64,000 bases of DNA from sequence record NC_049851.1; one strand, 5' to 3'. Every line of letters begins with the position of its first letter. The stretch's first letter is position 1. The notes below the pieces were generated by a model. The model did no database searches, was not told the origin of the DNA, and saw only the letters and a program-made list of their open reading frames with translations. The translations under genes and the position numbers were made by a program. This document shows positions 33,429 to 58,386 of the stretch, piece after piece.

Positions 33429-33635
33429 ATGAACAACGTAGCGTCCCGCATTCTCGGCATCCTGAGCACCGAACTCGATCTCGAACCCGAGCACCTGAGT
33501 GTCGACCATTCGTTCCACTTTTCGGAATTCGAAACCGCACTGGACGACGAGTTCGATCTTCTGTCGGGTGCCGTCGTCTACGAATTCATGTCCGTGCGGG
33601 ACATGGCATCGCGCATCGAGCGAGTTCTGGCGTGA
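33429..33635 (+). CDS. Acyl-carrier-protein-like protein lacking the DSL loop
   Basis: Aligns by eye to AcpP (RILGILSTELDL...SF...EFETALDDEFD...SVRD); the VEDLGADSLD segment is absent. Confidence 0.65.
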   Translation: MNNVASRILGILSTELDLEPEHLSVDHSFHFSEFETALDDEFDLLSGAVVYEFMSVRDMASRIERVLA

Positions 33636-33952
33636 AGCTCAGTCCGCTACAGCGCAAGATTATGGTGCTGGTGCGTGACGCGTTTGTTACCTACTACAGC
33701 CACACCCAGCTTTTCATTTGTAACGAGGTGAAGACGGCCGCGCACGCGCTCAATCGATCAGTGGACGATTCGTCCGTGAACGACTTGCTGTGGGCTATTC
33801 GTGAAGCACTCGGAGGCCGTAATACGCTGGGTGATTGGCTCATGTGGGAGTATGACCCTGCTGTCTATCTGACGGGCACAGAGCGAAATCGTATCCTCAA
33901 CCTGTGTCGAGAAGCTTGGCTCGACGCTATTCTCGAACGGGGTGAAATTTGA
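33632..33952 (+). CDS. IC...RxAW paralogue family member
   Basis: LFICNEV ... ALGGRNTLGDWL ... REAWL. Confidence 0.7.
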   Translation: MKLSPLQRKIMVLVRDAFVTYYSHTQLFICNEVKTAAHALNRSVDDSSVNDLLWAIREALGGRNTLGDWLMWEYDPAVYLTGTERNRILNLCREAWLDAILERGEI

Positions 33953-34329
33953 AAGACGATGACGAGTACTTCAGCGCGAAAGAACTGGAAATCCTGAATC
34001 TGGTGCTGGAGCGGTTGGAACACGCGGCAGAGACCCCGGTGGATGGTGCCCATCAGTACCTGTGCCTGCACATCGGCAGCGTCGGGCGCGAACTCAGCTA
34101 CTCCAAAAAGCGCTATTTCTTCCATCGCCTATTCGGGCTCGACACCACGTACACGAAGGCGGCGCAAGCCCTGATCGAACAGATCGCACAAGCACTCGAC
34201 GGCAAGAGCGGCAACACGCTTCAGGGTTGGGTGAGTCTGCGCACTGGCTACATACCGTACGCAGATGTCATGAACGCGGCGCGTGATGCGTGGCTTCGTC
34301 GTGCACTCGAAATCGGGTATTTCGGATGA
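33949..34329 (+). CDS. IC...RxAW paralogue family member
   Basis: EILNLVLERL..TPVD..YLC.H resembles 56209-56586; ends RDAWL. Confidence 0.7.
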   Translation: MKDDDEYFSAKELEILNLVLERLEHAAETPVDGAHQYLCLHIGSVGRELSYSKKRYFFHRLFGLDTTYTKAAQALIEQIAQALDGKSGNTLQGWVSLRTGYIPYADVMNAARDAWLRRALEIGYFG

Positions 34330-34667
34330 GCACCGCACTGAATGCACGCCAGATGGAGATCATGGTGTTTGTGTGCGCTGCCCTCAACTACCGTGATTCG
34401 GCCTATCCGCAGTACATCTGCCAAGCTGTGAAAGACGCGGCATGTGATCTGGACGCCTGTGTCTGGTACGGGTTCTTGCGCCCATACCGCAGTCAGGTCA
34501 ATTCGATCCTGCGCATGATCGATCAGGCATTGGATTGTCGGACGTTGGAGCGTTGGCTCGCGGGCAAGGTTTCGTTCAACGGGTTCCCGGCTGACCAGCT
34601 TGGACTTTTCAATCAATGTCGGGCCGGTTGGCTCGAAACCATAATCGCGCGAGGGCGCATCGAATGA
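34326..34667 (+). CDS. IC...RxAW paralogue family member
   Basis: YICQAV ... ALDCRTLERWL ... RAGWL. Confidence 0.7.
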   Translation: MSTALNARQMEIMVFVCAALNYRDSAYPQYICQAVKDAACDLDACVWYGFLRPYRSQVNSILRMIDQALDCRTLERWLAGKVSFNGFPADQLGLFNQCRAGWLETIIARGRIE

Positions 34668-50319: not shown

Positions 50320-51982
50320 CTATTCGGGCTTAATCTGGGCTCCGCATGACGGGCAGAAGTTGAGGTGTACGACCTTCCTCACGTTCCAGTCCCCGTACTC
50401 GATGGTGTGCTCCCACAGTTCGACGAACGGGTCGTAGGTCCGCAACTGATCCGTGACCCCGAGCCCGGCCCTTACGTCTTGCAGGTATTGTGCACGCTCC
50501 GTGCAGCACGCCGTCATCAGTCGAGGTCCGCACGCAGTTGCGTGTACAGGTCGACCGCCTTCTTGGTCGGCGCGTACGCCTGCTCGAACGAGCGGCCGCC
50601 ATCCGCAAGCGTCGCCTGCATGATCGGGACCGCGAACCCGTTCTCGACCAGAAAGTCGACGGACGCCGGGTTGATCGTGGACTGGGCGACGGGCCCGTGG
50701 TCGATCATGATGTTGAGCGTGTTGATCACGGCCTGCAACCGATCCTGAGACAGATCGATCAACTCGTACGTCAGATCGTCGTACTCGTGAACCTGCGTCA
50801 TCGTGTCGCGCAGATCGCGGTAGATTTCGTTGACCGTGTTGCTCGGCACCTGCGCGAGACGCGGCAGGATGCTCGTGTGCACGACGTGGGCCAGATGGGA
50901 GAGCCGGGCCATGCGCTGGCCCACGATCAGTTCCGCTGCTGTTTGCGTTGTCATGTTTTTCTCCTTAGAACATTTCCAGTTCGGCGTTGGCCGACACGAA
51001 ATACGTCTTACCACACTCGTCGCATTCCTGCTCGACGCCGCGCGGATCGCCGTACCAGCCGTCCTGCTCTTCACCGCAGTACGGACAGTTGATGTGCATG
51101 GCCTTGACCGTGACCGTCTGGACAATGCGCTTGCCGTCAGCCGTGGTCGGCGGTTCCTTACCGGCCAACAGCCCGGTTTCCTTGTCGCTCATTTTCTCTC
51201 CTTGCGTTGTAAGTTTCGATCTGCATCAGATGACGACGCACTTCCACCAACGTCGAGTGAAAGTTGCGGCGCACGCGACTCTGGTTCCCAAGCAGGTAGA
51301 AAATCTCGTATCCGGTTTCCCATTCGTAGCTGCCATCCAGTTGCTGAACGCGACCGGCCCACGGACGAAAGTGCGGCTTTTCACGAATCTGGGCGGCAGT
51401 ACGCGGGCACCCGGTCCCCGGATGGCGCACCATCCTGTTGGCTGAGAGCATGGCGTGCACTCGCCCGATTGCGCCGTCGAGCGTGCGGTGTACGGTGGTG
51501 CGCGGACGCTGCTGCATCCCACACGTGCCCCGCACGGTCCATCGACCCTGCTGAAACTTCATATGCGGCTTCGGGTGGTATCGCATGTTACCTCCGTTGA
51601 ATAGATGCCGCCATTCTAGTGACAGCCGATTACGCGGTCAAGCGCGAAATTCCAATGTTGTCCAGTTCCACCCGATACTGGTGAAAAAGTCGTAGATCGA
51701 CCGATGGCTCTTGCTCTCGACATGCCGCAACGGATTGTCCGGCACGTAGTCCCAGCCGTCTGCGTACGCGTTCCAGTCACCGATGTCCATGTAGGTCGTG
51801 AACTTCCGGAATCCGGGCACCCGGTTCTTCATGTTCTGGCGCACGCGTTCCACCTGCGCGCGACGCCAGCCGCTGAGTGCGGTAGCCGCGTGGTAGCGTC
51901 CGACTTCCCCGAGCCCAGGGATGCCAATGTCGTGCAACACGTGCGGCTGCGTATGCCACTCAAGCACGTAGATTCGATCCAT
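50320..51982 (-). other. Five small hypothetical genes (50320-50517 Zn-finger, 50517-50954, 50965-51192 Zn-ribbon CPYC/CDEC, 51158-51586, 51638-51982)
   Basis: AAGGAG/GGAGG RBSs and coupled junctions. Confidence 0.6.
51613..51641 (-). promoter_or_regulatory. sigma70-type promoter
   Basis: TTGACC-17-TAGAAT; the -10 is flanked by a G:T-containing GCTGTCA/TGGCGGC stem. Confidence 0.75.
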
Positions 51983-51990
51983 GTCTCTCC

Positions 51991-52335
51991 TTACCAGTTT
52001 TCGATCATCCAGTACACCCACGCCATCCGCGTCTTTCTGAGCAGCGGGTCGGCGTCGGTGGTCCGGATACGGTGCTGCCACCACAGCCACTCGTCCAGTC
52101 CGGAACAGCGGTCGAGTAACCGGGCGACACGGACGATCAGATTGTCGACCGCGTTGTTGATTTCTCGATCCGTGAACTCTTGGCGTAGGCCACCGGACGC
52201 CCGGTAGATGGCGCTGCACACACGGTCAGCCTGCCTGTCTTCGAGCCACATGTAGGCACGGCACAGGATACGGCGTTGCAAGTCCGTGATGCCAAGCTTT
52301 TCCGCGAACTCGATCTTTTGCTGTTCACCACGCAT
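51991..52335 (-). CDS. IC...RxAW paralogue, array member 13
   Basis: RVCSAI...LDEWL...TRMAWVYWMIENW. Confidence 0.85.
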   Translation of the reverse strand: MRGEQQKIEFAEKLGITDLQRRILCRAYMWLEDRQADRVCSAIYRASGGLRQEFTDREINNAVDNLIVRVARLLDRCSGLDEWLWWQHRIRTTDADPLLRKTRMAWVYWMIENW

Positions 52336-52649
52336 CACCAGTTCTCCAACATGAACTGAGTCCACGCGATCCGCGACTCCTGAACCCACTTGTGATTCTG
52401 CGAATAGGCTGGGTAGCCGCGCCGTGCCAGCCAGTCCGTGTATGAGATACAGCAGTCGATTTCGTTGTGGATGCGCCGCGACAAATCGCGCTCGGCCGCA
52501 AACAGGGCACGACGCTCGGACGATTTCGGCATCCGTTCCGCAATGATGTCATTGACTCCGTGCCCGATAGCGCCGCAGATGTACGTGTTGTTCCCGGCGC
52601 GCAGGTGGTGGAGAGCACGAACCAACAGTTCTCGATGCAACTCGTTCAT
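52335..52649 (-). CDS. IC...RxAW paralogue, array member 12
   Basis: YICGAI...YTDWL...SRIAWTQFMLENW. Confidence 0.85.
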   Translation of the reverse strand: MNELHRELLVRALHHLRAGNNTYICGAIGHGVNDIIAERMPKSSERRALFAAERDLSRRIHNEIDCCISYTDWLARRGYPAYSQNHKWVQESRIAWTQFMLENW

Positions 52650-53026
52650 ACCCAGTTCTCCAGCATGAAATCCATCCACGCGATGCGCGACTCACGCAGT
52701 TTCGCCGTGTCCTGATCATCGATGTGAACCTGACCGGTGTGATACAGCCACGCCGAATAGCTGCCAACCGGACTCAGGGCCGCGTGGATACGCGTGGTCA
52801 GCCGGTCTGTTGCCTCAGCCAGATACCGGAACTGATCGCGGCGTTCGCGCTCCGTGATCATGCCCGTCCGCTGCATTTGGCGGACACTGCGCATACATTC
52901 CTCACGTGCCTCGAACAGTGCAAAGCAGATCATGGAGTTACGGCCGTCGACCATGCGATCACGTGCGACGCGTAGCACACAGCGTGCCGTGTATCGGATT
53001 TTTGCGTTGTTGAATTCTTCGGTCAT
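52646..53026 (-). CDS. IC...RxAW paralogue, array member 11
   Basis: MICFAL...YSAWL...SRIAWMDFMLENWV. Confidence 0.85.
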   Translation of the reverse strand: MTEEFNNAKIRYTARCVLRVARDRMVDGRNSMICFALFEAREECMRSVRQMQRTGMITERERRDQFRYLAEATDRLTTRIHAALSPVGSYSAWLYHTGQVHIDDQDTAKLRESRIAWMDFMLENWV

Positions 53027-53427
53027 ACCCAGTTCTCCAGCATGAAATCCATCCACGCGATGCGGGTGGCGCGTCGGGCCTCTACGCTACTGTGGCCCGT
53101 CCCGTACGGAATGCCGTGCCGCATTTGCAGCCACGAGTCTAAGGAACTTGCGCCCCCAAGCTCCTGACGAATGCGAGTCGCCAGTTTCTTGTGTGCGAGC
53201 CCGATGTATTCGAGCGCCGCAGCCCCATCTTCCACCGTGATCGTGTCCGCGTTCACCTTCTGCTCGACGATAGTGCTGTGTTCCTCAGCCACGTTTGCGA
53301 GGGCAAAACAAATCATGCTGCTCTGCTTTCGCACGATGCGGAGCCGCGCGCACACCAAGAGCAAACGTGCGTAGTTCTTAACGGCGTGAGCCTCTACAAT
53401 ATCGTCGACTTCTTGTGTTTCGCTCAT
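53023..53427 (-). CDS. IC...RxAW paralogue, array member 10
   Basis: MICFAL...LDSWL...TRIAWMDFMLENWV. Confidence 0.85.
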   Translation of the reverse strand: MSETQEVDDIVEAHAVKNYARLLLVCARLRIVRKQSSMICFALANVAEEHSTIVEQKVNADTITVEDGAAALEYIGLAHKKLATRIRQELGGASSLDSWLQMRHGIPYGTGHSSVEARRATRIAWMDFMLENWV

Positions 53428-53807
53428 ACCCAGTTCTCCAGCATGAAGTTGATCCACGCTAAACGCGTGACCCGCAGCGGCTCCCGGAGTTCTCGGGCCT
53501 TGAGTCTGCGCGGCAGGCATCCCTTGTTCAGAATCCACGACGTAAGCGACGTGTAGCCCTGCAACTCGGTGATGATACGATGTTGCAGAGCATCACGGGC
53601 TGCGTTCATAACGTCGATCACGTGGTTGCACTCGGTGGCTGTCAGGCATCCGCGCAGTAGCGCGTCCTTGGCCGCCGACACGTGGTTGTCCTTTACGACC
53701 GAGATTGCGACACAGATGTACTGCGACCGGCCTTCCTCGAATCGTTCACGTGCACCTTGCAACAGTGTCCGAGCCGCTGACCGAATTTCGTCATGCGTGG
53801 GCGTCAT
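53424..53807 (-). CDS. IC...RxAW paralogue, array member 9
   Basis: YICVAI...LTSWI...TRLAWINFMLENWV. Confidence 0.85.
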   Translation of the reverse strand: MTPTHDEIRSAARTLLQGARERFEEGRSQYICVAISVVKDNHVSAAKDALLRGCLTATECNHVIDVMNAARDALQHRIITELQGYTSLTSWILNKGCLPRRLKARELREPLRVTRLAWINFMLENWV

Positions 53808-54139
53808 GCGGCCTCCACCTGCTCGATCATCCACTGGACCCATACGATGCGGGTCTCGCGGATTCCCTTCAGGTCGTAGTACGGATCGTTGCTGTTACGC
53901 AGTTGCCGGGACGACCAGCCGTTGAGCGTAGTGTACGGGTAGATCAGGATATTGATCCACGCACCCAGATCACGCCGGGCACACACGAGATCGTTCAGCG
54001 TGTAGTTCTGGTTCGGGAGCAGGAGATTCAGGTACTTGTAGGCGCGATCCAGTGCGTTGCACAGGAACTCTTCATCCTTGTTGCGGATATAGCCCTTCGC
54101 CAATTGCAGCAGCCGGATTTTCAGCGCTTTGTGTTGCAT
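53804..54139 (-). CDS. IC...RxAW paralogue, array member 8
   Basis: GGAGGTGA RBS; FLCNAL...LNGW...TRIVWVQWMIEQ. Confidence 0.85.
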   Translation of the reverse strand: MQHKALKIRLLQLAKGYIRNKDEEFLCNALDRAYKYLNLLLPNQNYTLNDLVCARRDLGAWINILIYPYTTLNGWSSRQLRNSNDPYYDLKGIRETRIVWVQWMIEQVEAA

Positions 54140-54154
54140 GGTCACCTCCAAAAG

Positions 54155-54204
54155 AAAACGAGTTGCAAGAATACAGCGCGGGCCGTACCTTGTCAACTCG
54201 TTTT
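54155..54204 (-). promoter_or_regulatory. Terminator-promoter junction inside the paralogue array
   Basis: TTGACA-17-TATTCT. AAAACGAGTTGACAAG / CTTGCAACTCGTTTT arms cover -35 and flank -10, followed by a T-tract. Confidence 0.8.
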
Positions 54205-54206
54205 CA

Positions 54207-54521
54207 TCACTTCCAGTTATCCAGCATCCACTGAATCCACGCGATCCGCGTTTCTTGTGTGAGCGCTGCCGGAAGGTAGCGCTGGTTGTAGCCGGTTTCC
54301 TTCTCGATGTACGATTCCAGTGTCCACCGGAAACCCATCTGATCGCGCTCGGCACCCATGGCCGCAGCCAGAATTCCATACACGTGCTCGCGCAGGTCCT
54401 CGGCGGTATCGACCATGTTGCGCTCACGCCCGATCTTGGAGATCAGGCAGCACACGAAGTCGTCACCACGCAGCAGCCGTCGCTGTACCTCTTCCAGAAT
54501 CTGGCGGTATTCAGCCTTCAT
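54207..54521 (-). CDS. IC...RxAW paralogue, array member 7
   Basis: FVCCLI...LESYI...TRIAWIQWMLDNWK. Confidence 0.85.
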   Translation of the reverse strand: MKAEYRQILEEVQRRLLRGDDFVCCLISKIGRERNMVDTAEDLREHVYGILAAAMGAERDQMGFRWTLESYIEKETGYNQRYLPAALTQETRIAWIQWMLDNWK

Positions 54522-54747
54522 GCGGCTGCTCCGGGTGCTTGAGGCGACCACGCGGTTCTTCGTCGTTTTCCGCGCGCTCGACACCGACCGTGTAATTCGC
54601 AGTCGAGGCCGTTACGGTGGCCAGCACCGCAGTGAGTTCGACCGGCGTCAGCCCGTGCTTGGAGGCGAGGCCCTGCATGAACGTGTACAGTTCTGAGGTT
54701 GCGAGTGCGACACCCCAATGTCGCTCGTGAATCGGCATCAGTCCCAT
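54511..54747 (-). CDS. Unrelated small hypothetical protein inserted in the array
   Basis: Coupled at both ends; lacks the family motifs. Confidence 0.6.
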   Translation of the reverse strand: MGLMPIHERHWGVALATSELYTFMQGLASKHGLTPVELTAVLATVTASTANYTVGVERAENDEEPRGRLKHPEQPHEG

Positions 54748-55055
54748 TATGCCCAGTTCTCCATCATGTAGGTGAGCCACTGGACACGCGTTTCCTTCAT
54801 GTCACGCTTGTCCAGACGCTGGTGACCAGTGCACAGGCGCACGAAGTCGTCGAGGACAACCGGCTGATCTTCCGGGGTCCGTGTGCAGTTACGCAGAATC
54901 TGCGTCACGTGCGTGCGCAGCACCTCAGCCGCGTCCGGTGCGTTCAGGTGGTTGCCAGCGATACGGATTGCCGTACACACGAGCATCACACTGTCCGTCT
55001 CGATCAGATCGCGCGCCTTTTCCAGAATGCGGTAGTAGGTGTCACGCATCTGCAT
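54747..55055 (-). CDS. IC...RxAW paralogue, array member 6
   Basis: LVCTAI...TRVQWLTYMMENWA. Confidence 0.85.
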   Translation of the reverse strand: MQMRDTYYRILEKARDLIETDSVMLVCTAIRIAGNHLNAPDAAEVLRTHVTQILRNCTRTPEDQPVVLDDFVRLCTGHQRLDKRDMKETRVQWLTYMMENWA

Positions 55056-55500
55056 CTTTCCCCTTCTGCTCTTGTTCCTCGGCCGCGATGCGCGCCAATT
55101 CGCGGGTGAAATCGATATCCTGCTCCACCATCCACCGGGCCCAAATGGCACGCGTCTTCTGGAGGTCTTCGAACACAAGTCCCGCTGCCTCGTACCCGTG
55201 GACGCGGTGAAGCCATGCTTCGAGCGTGTCCCCATCACCCAGCACCTTACTGATGTACCACACAATCTCGCTGGCTTCTGCGCTGATGGTGGTGCCCTCG
55301 ATTTCCAGTGCGTTGAAGAACGAACCGGGACCATTCACCGTGTCACGCCCGGACTGCTCGCGATTAATCTGGACAGCCGCAGCCTCGATTGCGTGGCATA
55401 GGAACGAGTGAACGTTCCCGCTATGCGAATTCTGGCCCGGGCCATTTTCGAGCACCAGTTGCGCTGCACGCAGCAGAAGTTGCTTTTGGATTTCTTTCAT
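55042..55500 (-). CDS. IC...RxAW paralogue, array member 5 (C-terminally extended)
   Basis: FLCHAIE...LEAWL...TRAIWARWMVEQ. Confidence 0.8.
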   Translation of the reverse strand: MKEIQKQLLLRAAQLVLENGPGQNSHSGNVHSFLCHAIEAAAVQINREQSGRDTVNGPGSFFNALEIEGTTISAEASEIVWYISKVLGDGDTLEAWLHRVHGYEAAGLVFEDLQKTRAIWARWMVEQDIDFTRELARIAAEEQEQKGKDADA

Positions 55501-55502
55501 TG

Positions 55503-55859
55503 TCATTCTCCCATCATGTGACGGAGCCACGCGAGGCGGCCAAGCTTTGTTAGTTCAGCGCACGCCGTGCCCGGGGTCAGCCCCATAGCGTCCTCGACCC
55601 AGCCTTCGTAGGTCATGAAGCCCTTGATTTGGGCCTGTACGAACTCCACTAGTTCGGCTGCTGCCTGAACGTATTCGCGCTGCTCCTTCGTTTCCAAGCG
55701 CCGCCCATGCAGGCCGTCGAAGTAGCCGGTGCTCAAGCCCGTCATGATGTTGCCAGCGCCCTCGATTGCGTGGCATAGGAAGTGGTGCTGATCGTAGCGC
55801 GCGGACTCGATCACCAGTTGGTGCGCGAGTGCCAGAATCTCGTATTTCTTGCTCTTCAT
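55503..55859 (-). CDS. IC...RxAW paralogue, array member 4
   Basis: FLCHAIE...YEGWV...GRLAWLRHMMGE. Confidence 0.85.
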   Translation of the reverse strand: MKSKKYEILALAHQLVIESARYDQHHFLCHAIEGAGNIMTGLSTGYFDGLHGRRLETKEQREYVQAAAELVEFVQAQIKGFMTYEGWVEDAMGLTPGTACAELTKLGRLAWLRHMMGE

Positions 55860-56209
55860 TGCCAGTTGTTCTCCATCATCCACGTGATCCACGCAAGGCG
55901 CGTTGCCCGCATCTTCACTTGTTGTTCAGGGGCCGCCATGCTGGCCAGCGTCAGTTCCGGATGCCCGTTTTCGCGCAGCCACACTTCGAGCGTGTGAGCG
56001 CGTGAGCCATCCTTCAACTCCAGCAGGTTACCGATGTGGTAGTCGATATCCAACTCTGCGATATGATACGCTTCTTGCTCTTGCGCCGTCAAATCAGCCG
56101 TGAGTTGGGTGACTGCCCACTGAACGGCGCTGCACACGAATTCCTCGTTGCGCGCCTGAATCAGGTCCCATGCGGCACGCAGGATTTCCCGGTGAATGTT
56201 CTTCTGCAT
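55856..56209 (-). CDS. IC...RxAW paralogue, array member 3
   Basis: FVCSAV...LEVWL...TRLAWITWMMENNWQ. Confidence 0.85.
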   Translation of the reverse strand: MQKNIHREILRAAWDLIQARNEEFVCSAVQWAVTQLTADLTAQEQEAYHIAELDIDYHIGNLLELKDGSRAHTLEVWLRENGHPELTLASMAAPEQQVKMRATRLAWITWMMENNWQ

Positions 56210-56586
56210 CACCAGTTCTCCAGCATGTGCCGTACCCACGCGATGCGAACTTCACGCGTTCGCACGATGTGCTCGACTTTCGTCACCAGATCGTAGAGCG
56301 GAATGCCCAGCTTCTTTTCCAGATAGCTGTCGATGGTGCAGGAACCCGGAACCTCGCGGTCGAGAGCCGCGTTGATCGAGTTGTAGAGGGAGCGCGAGGC
56401 CACGCGCATTTCCTGCGAGCGCGCAGTCGGCCAACGCCACATGGCACGGTGGTTGACGGAATCGCCGCCCAGCGCGCTACCCGCGCTGGCCACATGGCCG
56501 CAGATCAGGGTTCGCTGGTCGACCGGTGTTGCGATAAGCCTTTCGAGTACCACTTCGAGGATTTCACGTTCTTGCGATGTCAGCAT
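56209..56586 (-). CDS. IC...RxAW paralogue, array member 2
   Basis: LICGHV...IDSYL...VRIAWVRHMLENW. Confidence 0.85.
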   Translation of the reverse strand: MLTSQEREILEVVLERLIATPVDQRTLICGHVASAGSALGGDSVNHRAMWRWPTARSQEMRVASRSLYNSINAALDREVPGSCTIDSYLEKKLGIPLYDLVTKVEHIVRTREVRIAWVRHMLENW

Positions 56587-56589
56587 CCA

Positions 56590-56916
56590 TTAACTCCAGT
56601 TGTCGAGCATCCACGTGATCCACGCGATGCGGGTTTCTCTCAGTGCCTGCTCCTGCGCACGCTGCTCCGTGTACGACAGATTCCACGGATCGTTCCGGAT
56701 ATGGCCGTGCTTCACGAGCCACGTGTTGAGCGAATGGGAGCCCTCCAGCAGCGTCGCGATCCGGGCCTTGATGGATTCTGCGGCATGTTTAGCGACTGCC
56801 GTACCCTCGGCCTTCGCGTACCGGTCGACGGCGACGCAGATGTACGTGTACCGCTTGCACGCGATGTCGGCTCGCGCCCATAGTAGCAGGTCGATTTCCT
56901 TGCTAGTCAGCTTCAT
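56590..56916 (-). CDS. IC...RxAW paralogue, array member 1
   Basis: YICVAV...LNTWL...TRIAWITWMLDNWS. Confidence 0.85.
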   Translation of the reverse strand: MKLTSKEIDLLLWARADIACKRYTYICVAVDRYAKAEGTAVAKHAAESIKARIATLLEGSHSLNTWLVKHGHIRNDPWNLSYTEQRAQEQALRETRIAWITWMLDNWS

Positions 56917-57064
56917 GGCCAGCCACCTCCACGTGAGCCACGCATTTCAGGCCCGTAGTGTATTCGATGAATGCCGCGCACTCCCAGTGCTTTTCGGCCG
57001 CACGGTCTGCGGCACCTGCGAGCGCCGCGAGAAGCAGAATCGCACCCAGAACCATCTGTTTCAT
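56903..57064 (-). CDS. Small secreted/membrane protein (53 aa, not in the ORF track)
   Basis: GGAGG RBS; MKQMVLGAILLLAALAGA signal-like N-terminus. Confidence 0.55.
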   Translation of the reverse strand: MKQMVLGAILLLAALAGAADRAAEKHWECAAFIEYTTGLKCVAHVEVAGHEAD

Positions 57065-57106
57065 GGAAACCTCCCCGATGTCTAAAGCGCTACTTTACAC
57101 GCCCGG

Positions 57107-57568
57107 CTACCGTAGCGCAACAGAAATATCATGCTTTTTGTACGCGGCCTCGATAACCACATCCGCGCTCAGCCAGTTGGCGGCGGCCACACGCTTCATC
57201 GCCTTCACCCACTCGCGACGGAATGTCACGGAATCGGCACCGAACGAGGCCAGCGCGTCGTGCTCGAATTGCATGGAACTGAGCATTTGACGATGCGGCT
57301 GAAGTTGGGCCTGCCATTCGGAGAACGCAGGGTTCTGGTATTCGGTCAGGAGAATCGCGTCGATGCGATTGCCCTCCAGTGATCGGTCGTACAGGTCGTC
57401 CGGGATCGCGTGGCCGACCACGCACTTACAGCCGTTGTCACCACGATACATGCAACCCCAGCCTCCGTCCATCTTCGTGATGGTGGAAGGGCGGCCCTGC
57501 TCCAGAATAGCGAGTGCGAGGTGGTCAAACAGGATTTGTCGCGCGTCTCGGATGTCGTCGTAGCTCAT
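57107..57568 (-). CDS. Conserved phage hypothetical protein
   Basis: CMYRGDNGCKCVVGHAIPDDLY...LEG motif seen in many phage proteins of unknown function. Confidence 0.7.
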   Translation of the reverse strand: MSYDDIRDARQILFDHLALAILEQGRPSTITKMDGGWGCMYRGDNGCKCVVGHAIPDDLYDRSLEGNRIDAILLTEYQNPAFSEWQAQLQPHRQMLSSMQFEHDALASFGADSVTFRREWVKAMKRVAAANWLSADVVIEAAYKKHDISVALR

Positions 57569-58386
57569 CAGAATTCCTCGTCGTTGGGGATGGGTTTCAC
57601 ACGCGAGAAGAACATCAGTTCCTTCAGGCATTCCATGCGCGTCGTGTACGCCCGCGTCTCGTGGTCGGCATCGCCATCGTCACCGTCGGGCCACAGCGCT
57701 GCCGCGATCTTCTTGTCGCCCGTGGCTGCGAACGAGATACGTTTGCAGTTTGCGGCAAACCAGTCAACCACTTGGTAGGCCGAGTACTGAGGAATCTTGC
57801 CCTCTTTCTTCACACGGTTTGCCAGTGCCTCGATGGCGCGCACGTACGTCGGACCCATGGCTTCGAGGCCCACGATACCGTCCCAGCGCACGACCACCGC
57901 GTCAGATGCCGAGGTCACGACACGGATACGCTGGGCCTGAGTGTTCAGGAACTGGAGCAGCGTCGCGATGGACATGCTTTCGGTGAAACCTGTGGCCTCC
58001 TTGGCAATCTTCATGCCTTTGGCCTTGCGTTGCGACACACCCTCGTCGGCACTCACGTACACGTTGACGACGCCATTGCCGACGTAGGTCGCGGTATCAC
58101 CGAAAACTCTTTGATCGTGGCTCGTGGCCTTGGTCCGAAGTTCGGGAATCGATTGGAAAGTGCAGTGCTCGAACGCGCGACGGCCGTCCGAGAACAGCGC
58201 GTGCACCCGCACCACGTGCGGAGTCAGGTATACCGTCTTGTACTTCTTGTTGCTGAACGTGTGATTCATCGTGGGCCAACGACGTCGCGCGTCAGCCAGA
58301 GCATCAGCTTCTGTTTCGTAGTTCAACGCCATATCGTTCAGCGTATCGTGGTTCATGATCTTCCATTGTTTGGGCAACGCCGCCAT
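57568..58386 (-). CDS. Hypothetical protein
   Basis: AAGGAGG RBS; first gene after the promoter. Confidence 0.7.
   Translation of the reverse strand: MAALPKQWKIMNHDTLNDMALNYETEADALADARRRWPTMNHTFSNKKYKTVYLTPHVVRVHALFSDGRRAFEHCTFQSIPELRTKATSHDQRVFGDTATYVGNGVVNVYVSADEGVSQRKAKGMKIAKEATGFTESMSIATLLQFLNTQAQRIRVVTSASDAVVVRWDGIVGLEAMGPTYVRAIEALANRVKKEGKIPQYSAYQVVDWFAANCKRISFAATGDKKIAAALWPDGDDGDADHETRAYTTRMECLKELMFFSRVKPIPNDEEF

Follow-up and report, generated by a model that had tools for sequence, protein, structure and literature searches.

Short patches of perfect DNA identity recur in a tandem array of 14 abutting small genes (g1 to g14) of Burkholderia phage BcepSauron, which lies on the minus strand at 51991-56916 of the window, that is, the whole 64,000-nucleotide stretch of record NC_049851.1 that was analysed here. 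The main cause of this identity is dual coding in an old tandem family of almost certainly coupled genes, at whose junctions the last codons of one gene also hold the signals that start translation of the next. The full explanation that we favour, and which we think is probably right, combines this dual-coding constraint with short-tract gene conversion and ordinary homologous recombination within the family.

The region 51900-57100 is 100% identical to BcepSauron (MK552141, 262,653 bp; window positions are those of this record minus 186,000) and 96.1% identical to the sister phage BcepSaruman (MK552140), the only sister genome that was compared. Both are jumbo myoviruses of the genus Sarumanvirus that infect B. 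cenocepacia, and a 2026 preprint gives their genome-wide average nucleotide identity (ANI) as 93%. The array was delimited using open reading frames (ORFs), start codons, protein alignment, profile hidden Markov models (HMMs) and the GenBank annotation, in which its genes are BcepSauron_390 to _403. Thirteen of the 14 genes are paralogues (g1-g7 and g9-g14; 102-152 aa), while g8 is an unrelated insert. All coordinates below are window positions, and the array genes and the patches within them are on the minus strand.

Two messages in the junction sequence

Three repeats had been reported when the DNA was read on its own, and all of them were recovered exactly. The 42-bp repeat has exactly two copies, at 52646-52687 and 53023-53064, and none of 100 shuffles gave any match to it. 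Its first 24 bp are present again at 53424-53447, as had been stated. The 22-bp repeat occurs at 55383-55404 and 55760-55781, and the 18-bp repeat at 55877-55894 and 56608-56625. None of the three repeats was expected in dinucleotide-preserving shuffles. When placed on the gene map, the 42-bp and 18-bp patches fall on gene junctions, whereas the 22-bp patch is internal and distant from any start codon. The first 42-bp copy contains the last 13 codons of g3 and its stop, together with the GGAG and ATG of g2. The second copy covers the end of g4 and the start of g3, and the 24-bp partial copy the end of g5 and the start of g4. The 18-bp repeat lies in the C-terminal motif of g12 (A-W-I-T-W-M) and of g14, and the internal 22-bp patch encodes F-L-C-H-A-I-E, including the invariant Cys of the family, in g10 and g11.

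At 12 of the 13 junctions, the stop codon overlaps the following start or is separated from it by no more than 3 nt (spacing of -14 to +3 nt, with ATGA, TGATG, TAATG and longer overlaps). A GGAG or GGAGG is found 6-10 nt upstream of the ATG, inside the L-E-N-W codons of the preceding gene. The array has the layout expected of a translationally coupled operon, namely stop and start codons that overlap or lie no more than a few nucleotides apart and a Shine-Dalgarno sequence within the upstream ORF, and all units are intact ORFs, each provided with a Shine-Dalgarno sequence and an ATG. Judged from this arrangement, the genes run head to tail and are almost certainly translationally coupled. The sole strongly conserved protein motif is the C-terminal motif R-[IL]-A-W-x-x-[WFH]-M-[LIM]-E-N-W, in which R..W...M is invariant. 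Since the Shine-Dalgarno sequence and the start/stop overlap are written in the codons of this motif, the junction patches carry two messages in the same bases, the C-terminal motif and the signals for starting translation of the next gene.

Synonymous conservation was assessed at aligned positions with an identical degenerate residue among the 13 paralogues, with the expectation taken from codon usage. Outside the C-terminal block the same codon was used at 588 of 1350 positions against 566 expected, and synonymous sites are therefore saturated there. Inside the block it was used at 235 of 352 positions, compared to 155 expected. The sequence-only reading had claimed that synonymous positions are identical within the patches while the flanking sequence is unrelated, and these counts bear out the contrast at synonymous sites. 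Its description of the paralogues as otherwise unalignable is correct for the DNA but not for the proteins, which can be aligned end to end at 25-33% identity. The C-terminal excess is family-wide and not specific to any pair, and dual coding explains this family-wide conservation at the junctions; it is the simplest cause, and the sequence-only reading had overlooked it. The Glu of the motif is GAG in nine of 10 genes, as GGAG demands. The Ala of R-I-A-W is GCG in all 10 genes that have Ala there, against a background usage of 0.31; no RNA structure was detected that would explain this constraint, and the Shine-Dalgarno sequence does not explain it either. RNAalifold predicted no base pairs over 12 aligned junctions and an Rfam search of the junctions returned nothing better than an E value of 0.94, which ruled out a structured RNA element at the junctions.

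The saturation also bears on whether g3/g4 (perhaps with g5) and g10/g11 could be young duplicates whose gene bodies diverged fast under positive selection before any change reached the constrained parts. The genes that share patches do lie side by side and are closest to each other among the paralogues (31% and 29% identity when the C-terminal block is left out), and the clade of neighbours g2-g5 has a support of 80/71. However, synonymous sites are saturated for the same pairs, with 13 of 31 positions of g3/g4 using the same codon where 12.7 were expected, and positive selection on the protein cannot cause synonymous saturation. In addition, terminal branches are 0.5-3.5 substitutions per site long, and both members of each pair have orthologues in both phages. 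Recent duplication is thus excluded by the saturated synonymous sites, and we regard it as extremely improbable. This agrees with the initial view that the patches are not relics of such an event, which a uniformly low synonymous divergence (dS) would have indicated.

Whether the DNA identity exceeds what the proteins require was assessed with a null model in which codons were resampled while the proteins were held fixed. The identical run of 39 coding nt between g3 and g4 had a P of 0.0025 for this pair and of 0.003 for any family pair reaching 38 nt, and the 22-nt run between g10 and g11 had a P of 0.007 for the pair. For the 18-nt repeat of g12 and g14 (P=0.076) and the 21-24 nt in common with g5 (P~0.075), identical residues and codon bias suffice, and no other paralogue pair was significant. 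Tract identity beyond protein and codon usage, one of the marks of concerted evolution, was therefore found for g3/g4 and g10/g11. The conserved S-M-I-C-F-A-L motif is encoded by different codons in g3 and g4, indicating that protein identity alone does not yield DNA identity. Of the 42-bp patch, the Shine-Dalgarno and start signals take up only some 16 nt at its end.

Proposed exchange between paralogues and recombination with related phages

The 22-bp patch is identical between g10 and g11 in both phages. Its Leu codon is CTA in both BcepSauron copies and CTG in both BcepSaruman copies, and in BcepSaruman the identity between the two genes is one base longer. This co-variation has the signature of concerted evolution, resting on essentially one site.

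The divergence between the two phages is strongly mosaic. Most array genes differ by 0-3%, but the difference reaches 13.5% in g5 and 20.4% in g11, with a comparable value for the N-terminal half of g10. The differences are concentrated in two blocks, the first (block A, 53445-53772) with 52 substitutions in g5 only and the second (block B, 55309-55830) with about 100 substitutions and a 3-bp indel, extending from the middle of g10 to the 5′ end of g11. In these segments dS is 0.39 (g5), 0.33 (N-terminal part of g10) and 0.58 (g11), compared to 0-0.09 in neighbouring genes. The ratio of nonsynonymous to synonymous divergence (dN/dS) of the divergent alleles is 0.22-0.34, and all 12 substitution types are present in the two blocks together. 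The high dS, the low dN/dS and the full range of substitution types indicate that g5 and the segment from the N-terminal part of g10 to g11 are alleles imported by homologous recombination from more distant relatives, and not fast-evolving or hypermutated genes. Positive selection behind the blocks was ruled out, as dS itself is 5-50 times higher there. Mutagenesis by a diversity-generating retroelement was ruled out as well, on the basis of a spectrum that is not adenine-specific and of the same dN/dS values.

The edges of block A lie 21 and 32 nt from the two junctions of g5. One edge of block B lies 26 nt from the g11/g12 junction and the other is in the middle of g10. Three of the four edges are thus within 35 nt of a junction (P=0.028, calculated for the array blocks only). 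The longest tract of identity between the two phages inside block B is 46 nt with 0 substitutions and coincides with the g11/g10 junction. The junctions are thus the sequences best suited to homologous recombination between alleles that have diverged. Breakpoints within the patches had been predicted, and the position of these three edges, 21-32 nt from a junction, supports this in part, but whole-gene indels occurred without any patch (see below). The comparison with a sister genome, proposed as a check for mosaic genes, did reveal them, as g5 and the g10-g11 segment are replaced alleles, but no paralogue is chimeric.

Taken together, we propose the following course of events. The array probably arose by accordion-like tandem duplication, because the neighbours g2-g5 are closest relatives, and its genes would then have diversified, most plausibly, to judge from context, as a panel of early accessory proteins for varied host targets. 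Junction bases are under the double constraint of the C-terminal motif and of the ribosome-binding site and start of the next gene. Short-tract gene conversion, or unequal pairing of adjacent copies, may have homogenised the patches at the g3/g4 junction and inside g10/g11, as suggested by the resampling statistics and the one concerted change. Diverged alleles have their longest identical tracts in the junction patches, so that recombination between co-infecting relatives would tend to resolve there, and the three block edges near junctions suggest that single genes could be swapped as units by junction crossovers. Both short-tract conversion between neighbours and homologous recombination that preferentially resolves in the conserved junctions are supported by these comparisons, but not proven.

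Mosaicism is not confined to the array. Mosaic blocks and indels are equally frequent in the other 48 kb of the window, and mosaicism is genome-wide; further blocks and gene-sized indels were seen across 1-48 kb, for example at 19.7-20.6, 22.4-23.6, 36.0-36.3 and 47.3-47.7 kb. Another block, at 57631-57790, is sharply bounded and has about 60 substitutions in 160 nt, within the 3′ part of a gene at 57568-58386.

This mosaicism across the window, as well as the edges of the block at 57631-57790, which are mid-gene, belong to the observations that speak against our interpretation. The edge statistic has just four edges, one of them mid-gene. BcepSaruman has the same 13 paralogues and g8 in the same order, with an array copy number of 13 in both phages and no chimeric paralogue. 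Gene conversion rests on one co-varying synonymous site and one adjacent base, for which the chance of parallel mutation is roughly 5-15%. The g3/g4 patch is identical at 42 of 42 positions in BcepSauron and at 40 of 42 in BcepSaruman (longest run 33 nt), with two changes in g3 that cannot be polarised without an outgroup. The patch pattern matched BcepSauron alone in IMG/VR, a metagenome scan for a further related genome gave no match, and a lookup of the exact g6 protein returned only the two NCBI genomes. The phage phiMatilda belongs to a different genus, with about 36% ANI (bioRxiv 10.64898/2026.10.21.760668).

Selection might also be the only force involved, acting on the codons of the conserved C-terminal helix, the Shine-Dalgarno sequence, its spacing and the start/stop overlap together with a strong codon bias; the block edges would then reflect selection for intact genes. 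We consider this unlikely. In its favour, synonymous conservation is family-wide, resampling with fixed proteins puts the 18-bp and 24-bp repeats at chance level, BcepSaruman has a collinear array, and the junction patches remained unchanged between diverged orthologues, as in the 46 nt of block B. Against it, the initiation signals make up only roughly 16 nt of the 42-bp patch, the 39-nt coding identity of g3/g4 is improbable when the proteins are held fixed (P=0.003), and the 22-bp patch, although internal, is the same in g10 and g11 of both phages and has a synonymous base that co-varies. There is also no conserved RNA structure at the junctions to add constraint.

Gene gain and loss could be followed at two further places. 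A second mini-array of distant family members, identified by HMM and ORFs, lies on the plus strand at 33632-34667 and consists of h1 (33632-33952), h2 (33949-34329) and h3 (34326-34667), joined via xTGA overlaps (GTGA, TTGA and ATGA). BcepSaruman lacks h1, giving a copy number of three against two, and the first 20 or so codons of its h2 cannot be aligned with those of BcepSauron. No identity patch was found at the boundaries of the h1 indel (33639-33982). Directly downstream of the main array lies g0 (51638-51982, minus strand), a member of a different small family. BcepSaruman carries an additional 125-aa paralogue of g0 as a precise whole-gene insertion of 363 bp at 51641 (L003 3367-3741), with at most 1 nt of boundary homology. 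Patch-mediated deletion was therefore ruled out for this gene and for h1, as no repeat is present at the boundaries.

These indels bear directly on the most far-reaching claim made from the sequence, that the array is a recombination-driven cassette system. As a dedicated system, with patches designed as homology anchors for high-frequency duplication, deletion and exchange, we find it very unlikely. In its favour, copies of the patches are found where units meet, allele replacement of single genes has junctions as its limits, the copy number at the second locus differs, and another jumbo phage has amplified the family independently, with two domains fused in one protein (see below). Against it, the 13 genes show no change in copy number, no reordering and no chimera between the two phages, most junction pairs have only 14-17 nt in common, the two whole-gene indels have no patch at their ends, and mosaicism extends over the genome. 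All copies are intact and individually translatable, which leaves no room for an arrangement of silent copies and an expression site. Neither a spectrum like that of a diversity-generating retroelement nor inverted repeats or recombinase sites were found; the repeats are direct and coding. Shufflon-type features were likewise missing, with no meaningful inverted repeats in the sequence and no recombinase in a search that was not exhaustive. The more modest part of the claim, that the patches anchor duplication, deletion or exchange, is partly supported for exchange, given the single-gene allele replacement and the concerted change in the 22-bp patch, but no duplication or deletion was seen in the array. 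Features of a genomic accordion were present only in part. The paralogues are head to tail, with 13 same-strand copies and a clade of closest neighbours (g2-g5), but copy number does not vary in the main array between the two phages and rearrangement junctions do not lie in flanking repeats, either at 51641 or at 33639-33982.

A bolder reading would treat the junction as a universal linker, by which family members are exchanged, gained or lost as ready-to-express units by the general recombination machinery, an integron-like economy without an integrase. We think this improbable. If true, it would mean that jumbo phages maintain a set of early proteins directed at the host, possibly anti-defence proteins, whose composition can be renewed rapidly.

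The gene family, the array and its surroundings

The 13 paralogues align over their full length and have an invariant Leu and Cys near the N-terminus. Twelve of them match the HMM of PHROG 8421, a family of unknown function, with a best E value of 7.8e-11. An HMM built from the array matched all 13 paralogues, gp40 of phage Bcep176 (E value of 4e-17) and two distant members at 33.4-34.3 kb, but not g8. A profile of the 13 proteins matched 1450 representative clusters (E<=0.001) among 1.84 billion, nearly all of them of about 100 aa. Pfam and NCBIfam contain no models or informative names for the family. The GenBank labels 'histidine kinase?' and 'HTH Cro subunit' carried by g2, g11 and g9 found no support in Pfam, NCBIfam or fold searches. 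For g1, AlphaFold2 gave a confident all-alpha model of six helices (predicted local distance difference test, pLDDT, 91; predicted template modelling score, pTM, 0.81). A fold search of the PDB with this model found no relative (best E value of 2.6), and its matches in BFVD were only uncharacterised phage proteins, from BcepSauron, BcepF1, Maja and the Xanthomonas phage RiverRider.

Temperate phages carry the family in single copy, in the early region of Bcep176 (gp40) and, on a metagenomic contig, beside a CI/Cro switch. In an unrelated metagenomic jumbo phage of about 236 kb (52% GC), four family domains are arranged in tandem (L006 9634-11242). Two of these four domains are fused as one 243-aa protein, which was seen on dozens of assemblies. 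In the tree of the array proteins, the grouping of g2-g5 on long branches suggests old local tandem duplication, and identity values pair g10 with g11 and g7 with g9 as reciprocal nearest neighbours. From the genomic context, one may reasonably guess that the family acts early, in host interaction or counter-defence.

The array genes were assigned from ORFs and protein alignment, and for g1 also from the HMM. From the distal end they are g1 (51991-52335, 114 aa), g2 (52335-52649, 104 aa, the 'histidine kinase?' of GenBank), g3 (52646-53026, 126 aa), g4 (53023-53427, 134 aa), g5 (53424-53807, 127 aa, one of the alleles divergent from BcepSaruman) and g6 (53804-54139, 111 aa). The latter is the first gene past the only intergenic gap in the array (54140-54206). 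On the other side of this gap lie g7 (54207-54521, 104 aa) and the non-family gene g8 (54511-54747, 78 aa), followed by g9 (54747-55055, 102 aa, 'HTH Cro subunit'), g10 (55042-55500, 152 aa, with the GenBank start at 55506), g11 (55503-55859, 118 aa, the most divergent allele), g12 (55856-56209, 117 aa), g13 (56209-56586, 125 aa) and g14 (56590-56916, 108 aa), which has a tblastn match to gp40 of Bcep176. From its overlaps, g8 would be translationally coupled on each side, and it occurs in both phages.

The gap at 54140-54206 contains a strong hairpin of at least 11 bp followed by a U-run, which is terminator-like (dG of -31.7 kcal/mol, z of -4.08). A promoter scan also found a sigma70-like TTGACA-17-TATTCT that overlaps this hairpin. 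The gap is therefore likely to be a terminator/promoter module, which suggests that the array is split into two transcription units, g14-g7 and g6-g1.

Within BcepSauron the array sits in a long one-directional run of small accessory genes. Directly upstream of g14, a 53-aa ORF (56903-57064, minus strand) with an N-terminal hydrophobic signal-like segment overlaps the start of g14 by 14 nt. Further upstream and in the same direction lie two adjacent superinfection-immunity (PF14373) genes, another tandem pair (minus strand; L011 3566-4005, about 246.1-246.6 kb of the record and 60.1-60.6 kb of the window). Two other GenBank names in this region appear doubtful, 'DNA polymerase III alpha subunit' for the 272-aa protein at 57568-58386 and 'glycosylhydrolase family 32?' at 51158-51586.

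Significance and comparison with known systems

The array clearly exemplifies DNA identity among old paralogues that is mostly due to the overlap of two constraints, one from protein coding and one from the initiation of translation. It therefore warns against taking such identity patches for recombination devices. The family itself merits functional study, with 16 copies in the window, about 1450 clusters, a confident fold without a solved relative and a position beside CI/Cro in temperate phages. From this context, the uncharacterised family can reasonably be considered a candidate for diversified early proteins of host interaction or counter-defence.

Among the closest parallels are genomic accordions. 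At the dmd-tifA locus of phage T4, segments are amplified and deleted by short-homology recombination at microhomologies of 6-10 bp (PMC9391042), and poxvirus accordions have been described as well (Elde et al. 2012, cited in PMC9391042). Like the array, these systems consist of head-to-tail small accessory genes in a large lytic virus, with units bounded by short repeats, and the virus's own recombination and replication machinery is enough, with no site-specific recombinase. The T4 amplicons, however, are young and identical, and rise and collapse within a few passages, whereas the array copies are ancient, with low protein identity and saturated dS. The array is also stable between two isolates, and its repeats are functional coding and ribosome-binding junctions of 14-42 nt, unlike the T4 microhomologies.

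Bacillus phage G has about 35 copies of a zinc-ribbon protein, a lineage-specific expansion in a jumbo phage (PMC7824862). This is similar to the array in being a large paralogous set of a small protein with unknown role, but the fold and the family differ. The same article cites BcepSauron for RNA ligases only and does not mention the array. Concerted evolution and short-tract gene conversion in tandem multigene families (e.g. PMC1855330) resemble the array in their local identical tracts amid divergence, one of which co-varies by genome here. Unlike in those families, the array tracts are very short (22-42 nt) and lie on the most constrained signals, so that conversion and selection are confounded and only one site co-varies.

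In the modular theory of Susskind and Botstein, and in the boundary sequences of lambdoid phages, mosaic exchange between phages takes place at gene boundaries or at conserved linker sequences. What sets the array apart from such modular mosaicism is that its junction sequence is reiterated 13 times in one operon, with paralogues as flanking genes. This reiteration permits out-of-register exchange in principle, and none was observed. The resemblance lies in the replacement of single genes by divergent alleles, with apparent crossovers at junctions that have a short conserved sequence. Single-gene allele replacement bounded by junctions thus offers a testable example of how conserved boundaries may channel mosaic exchange in large lytic phages.

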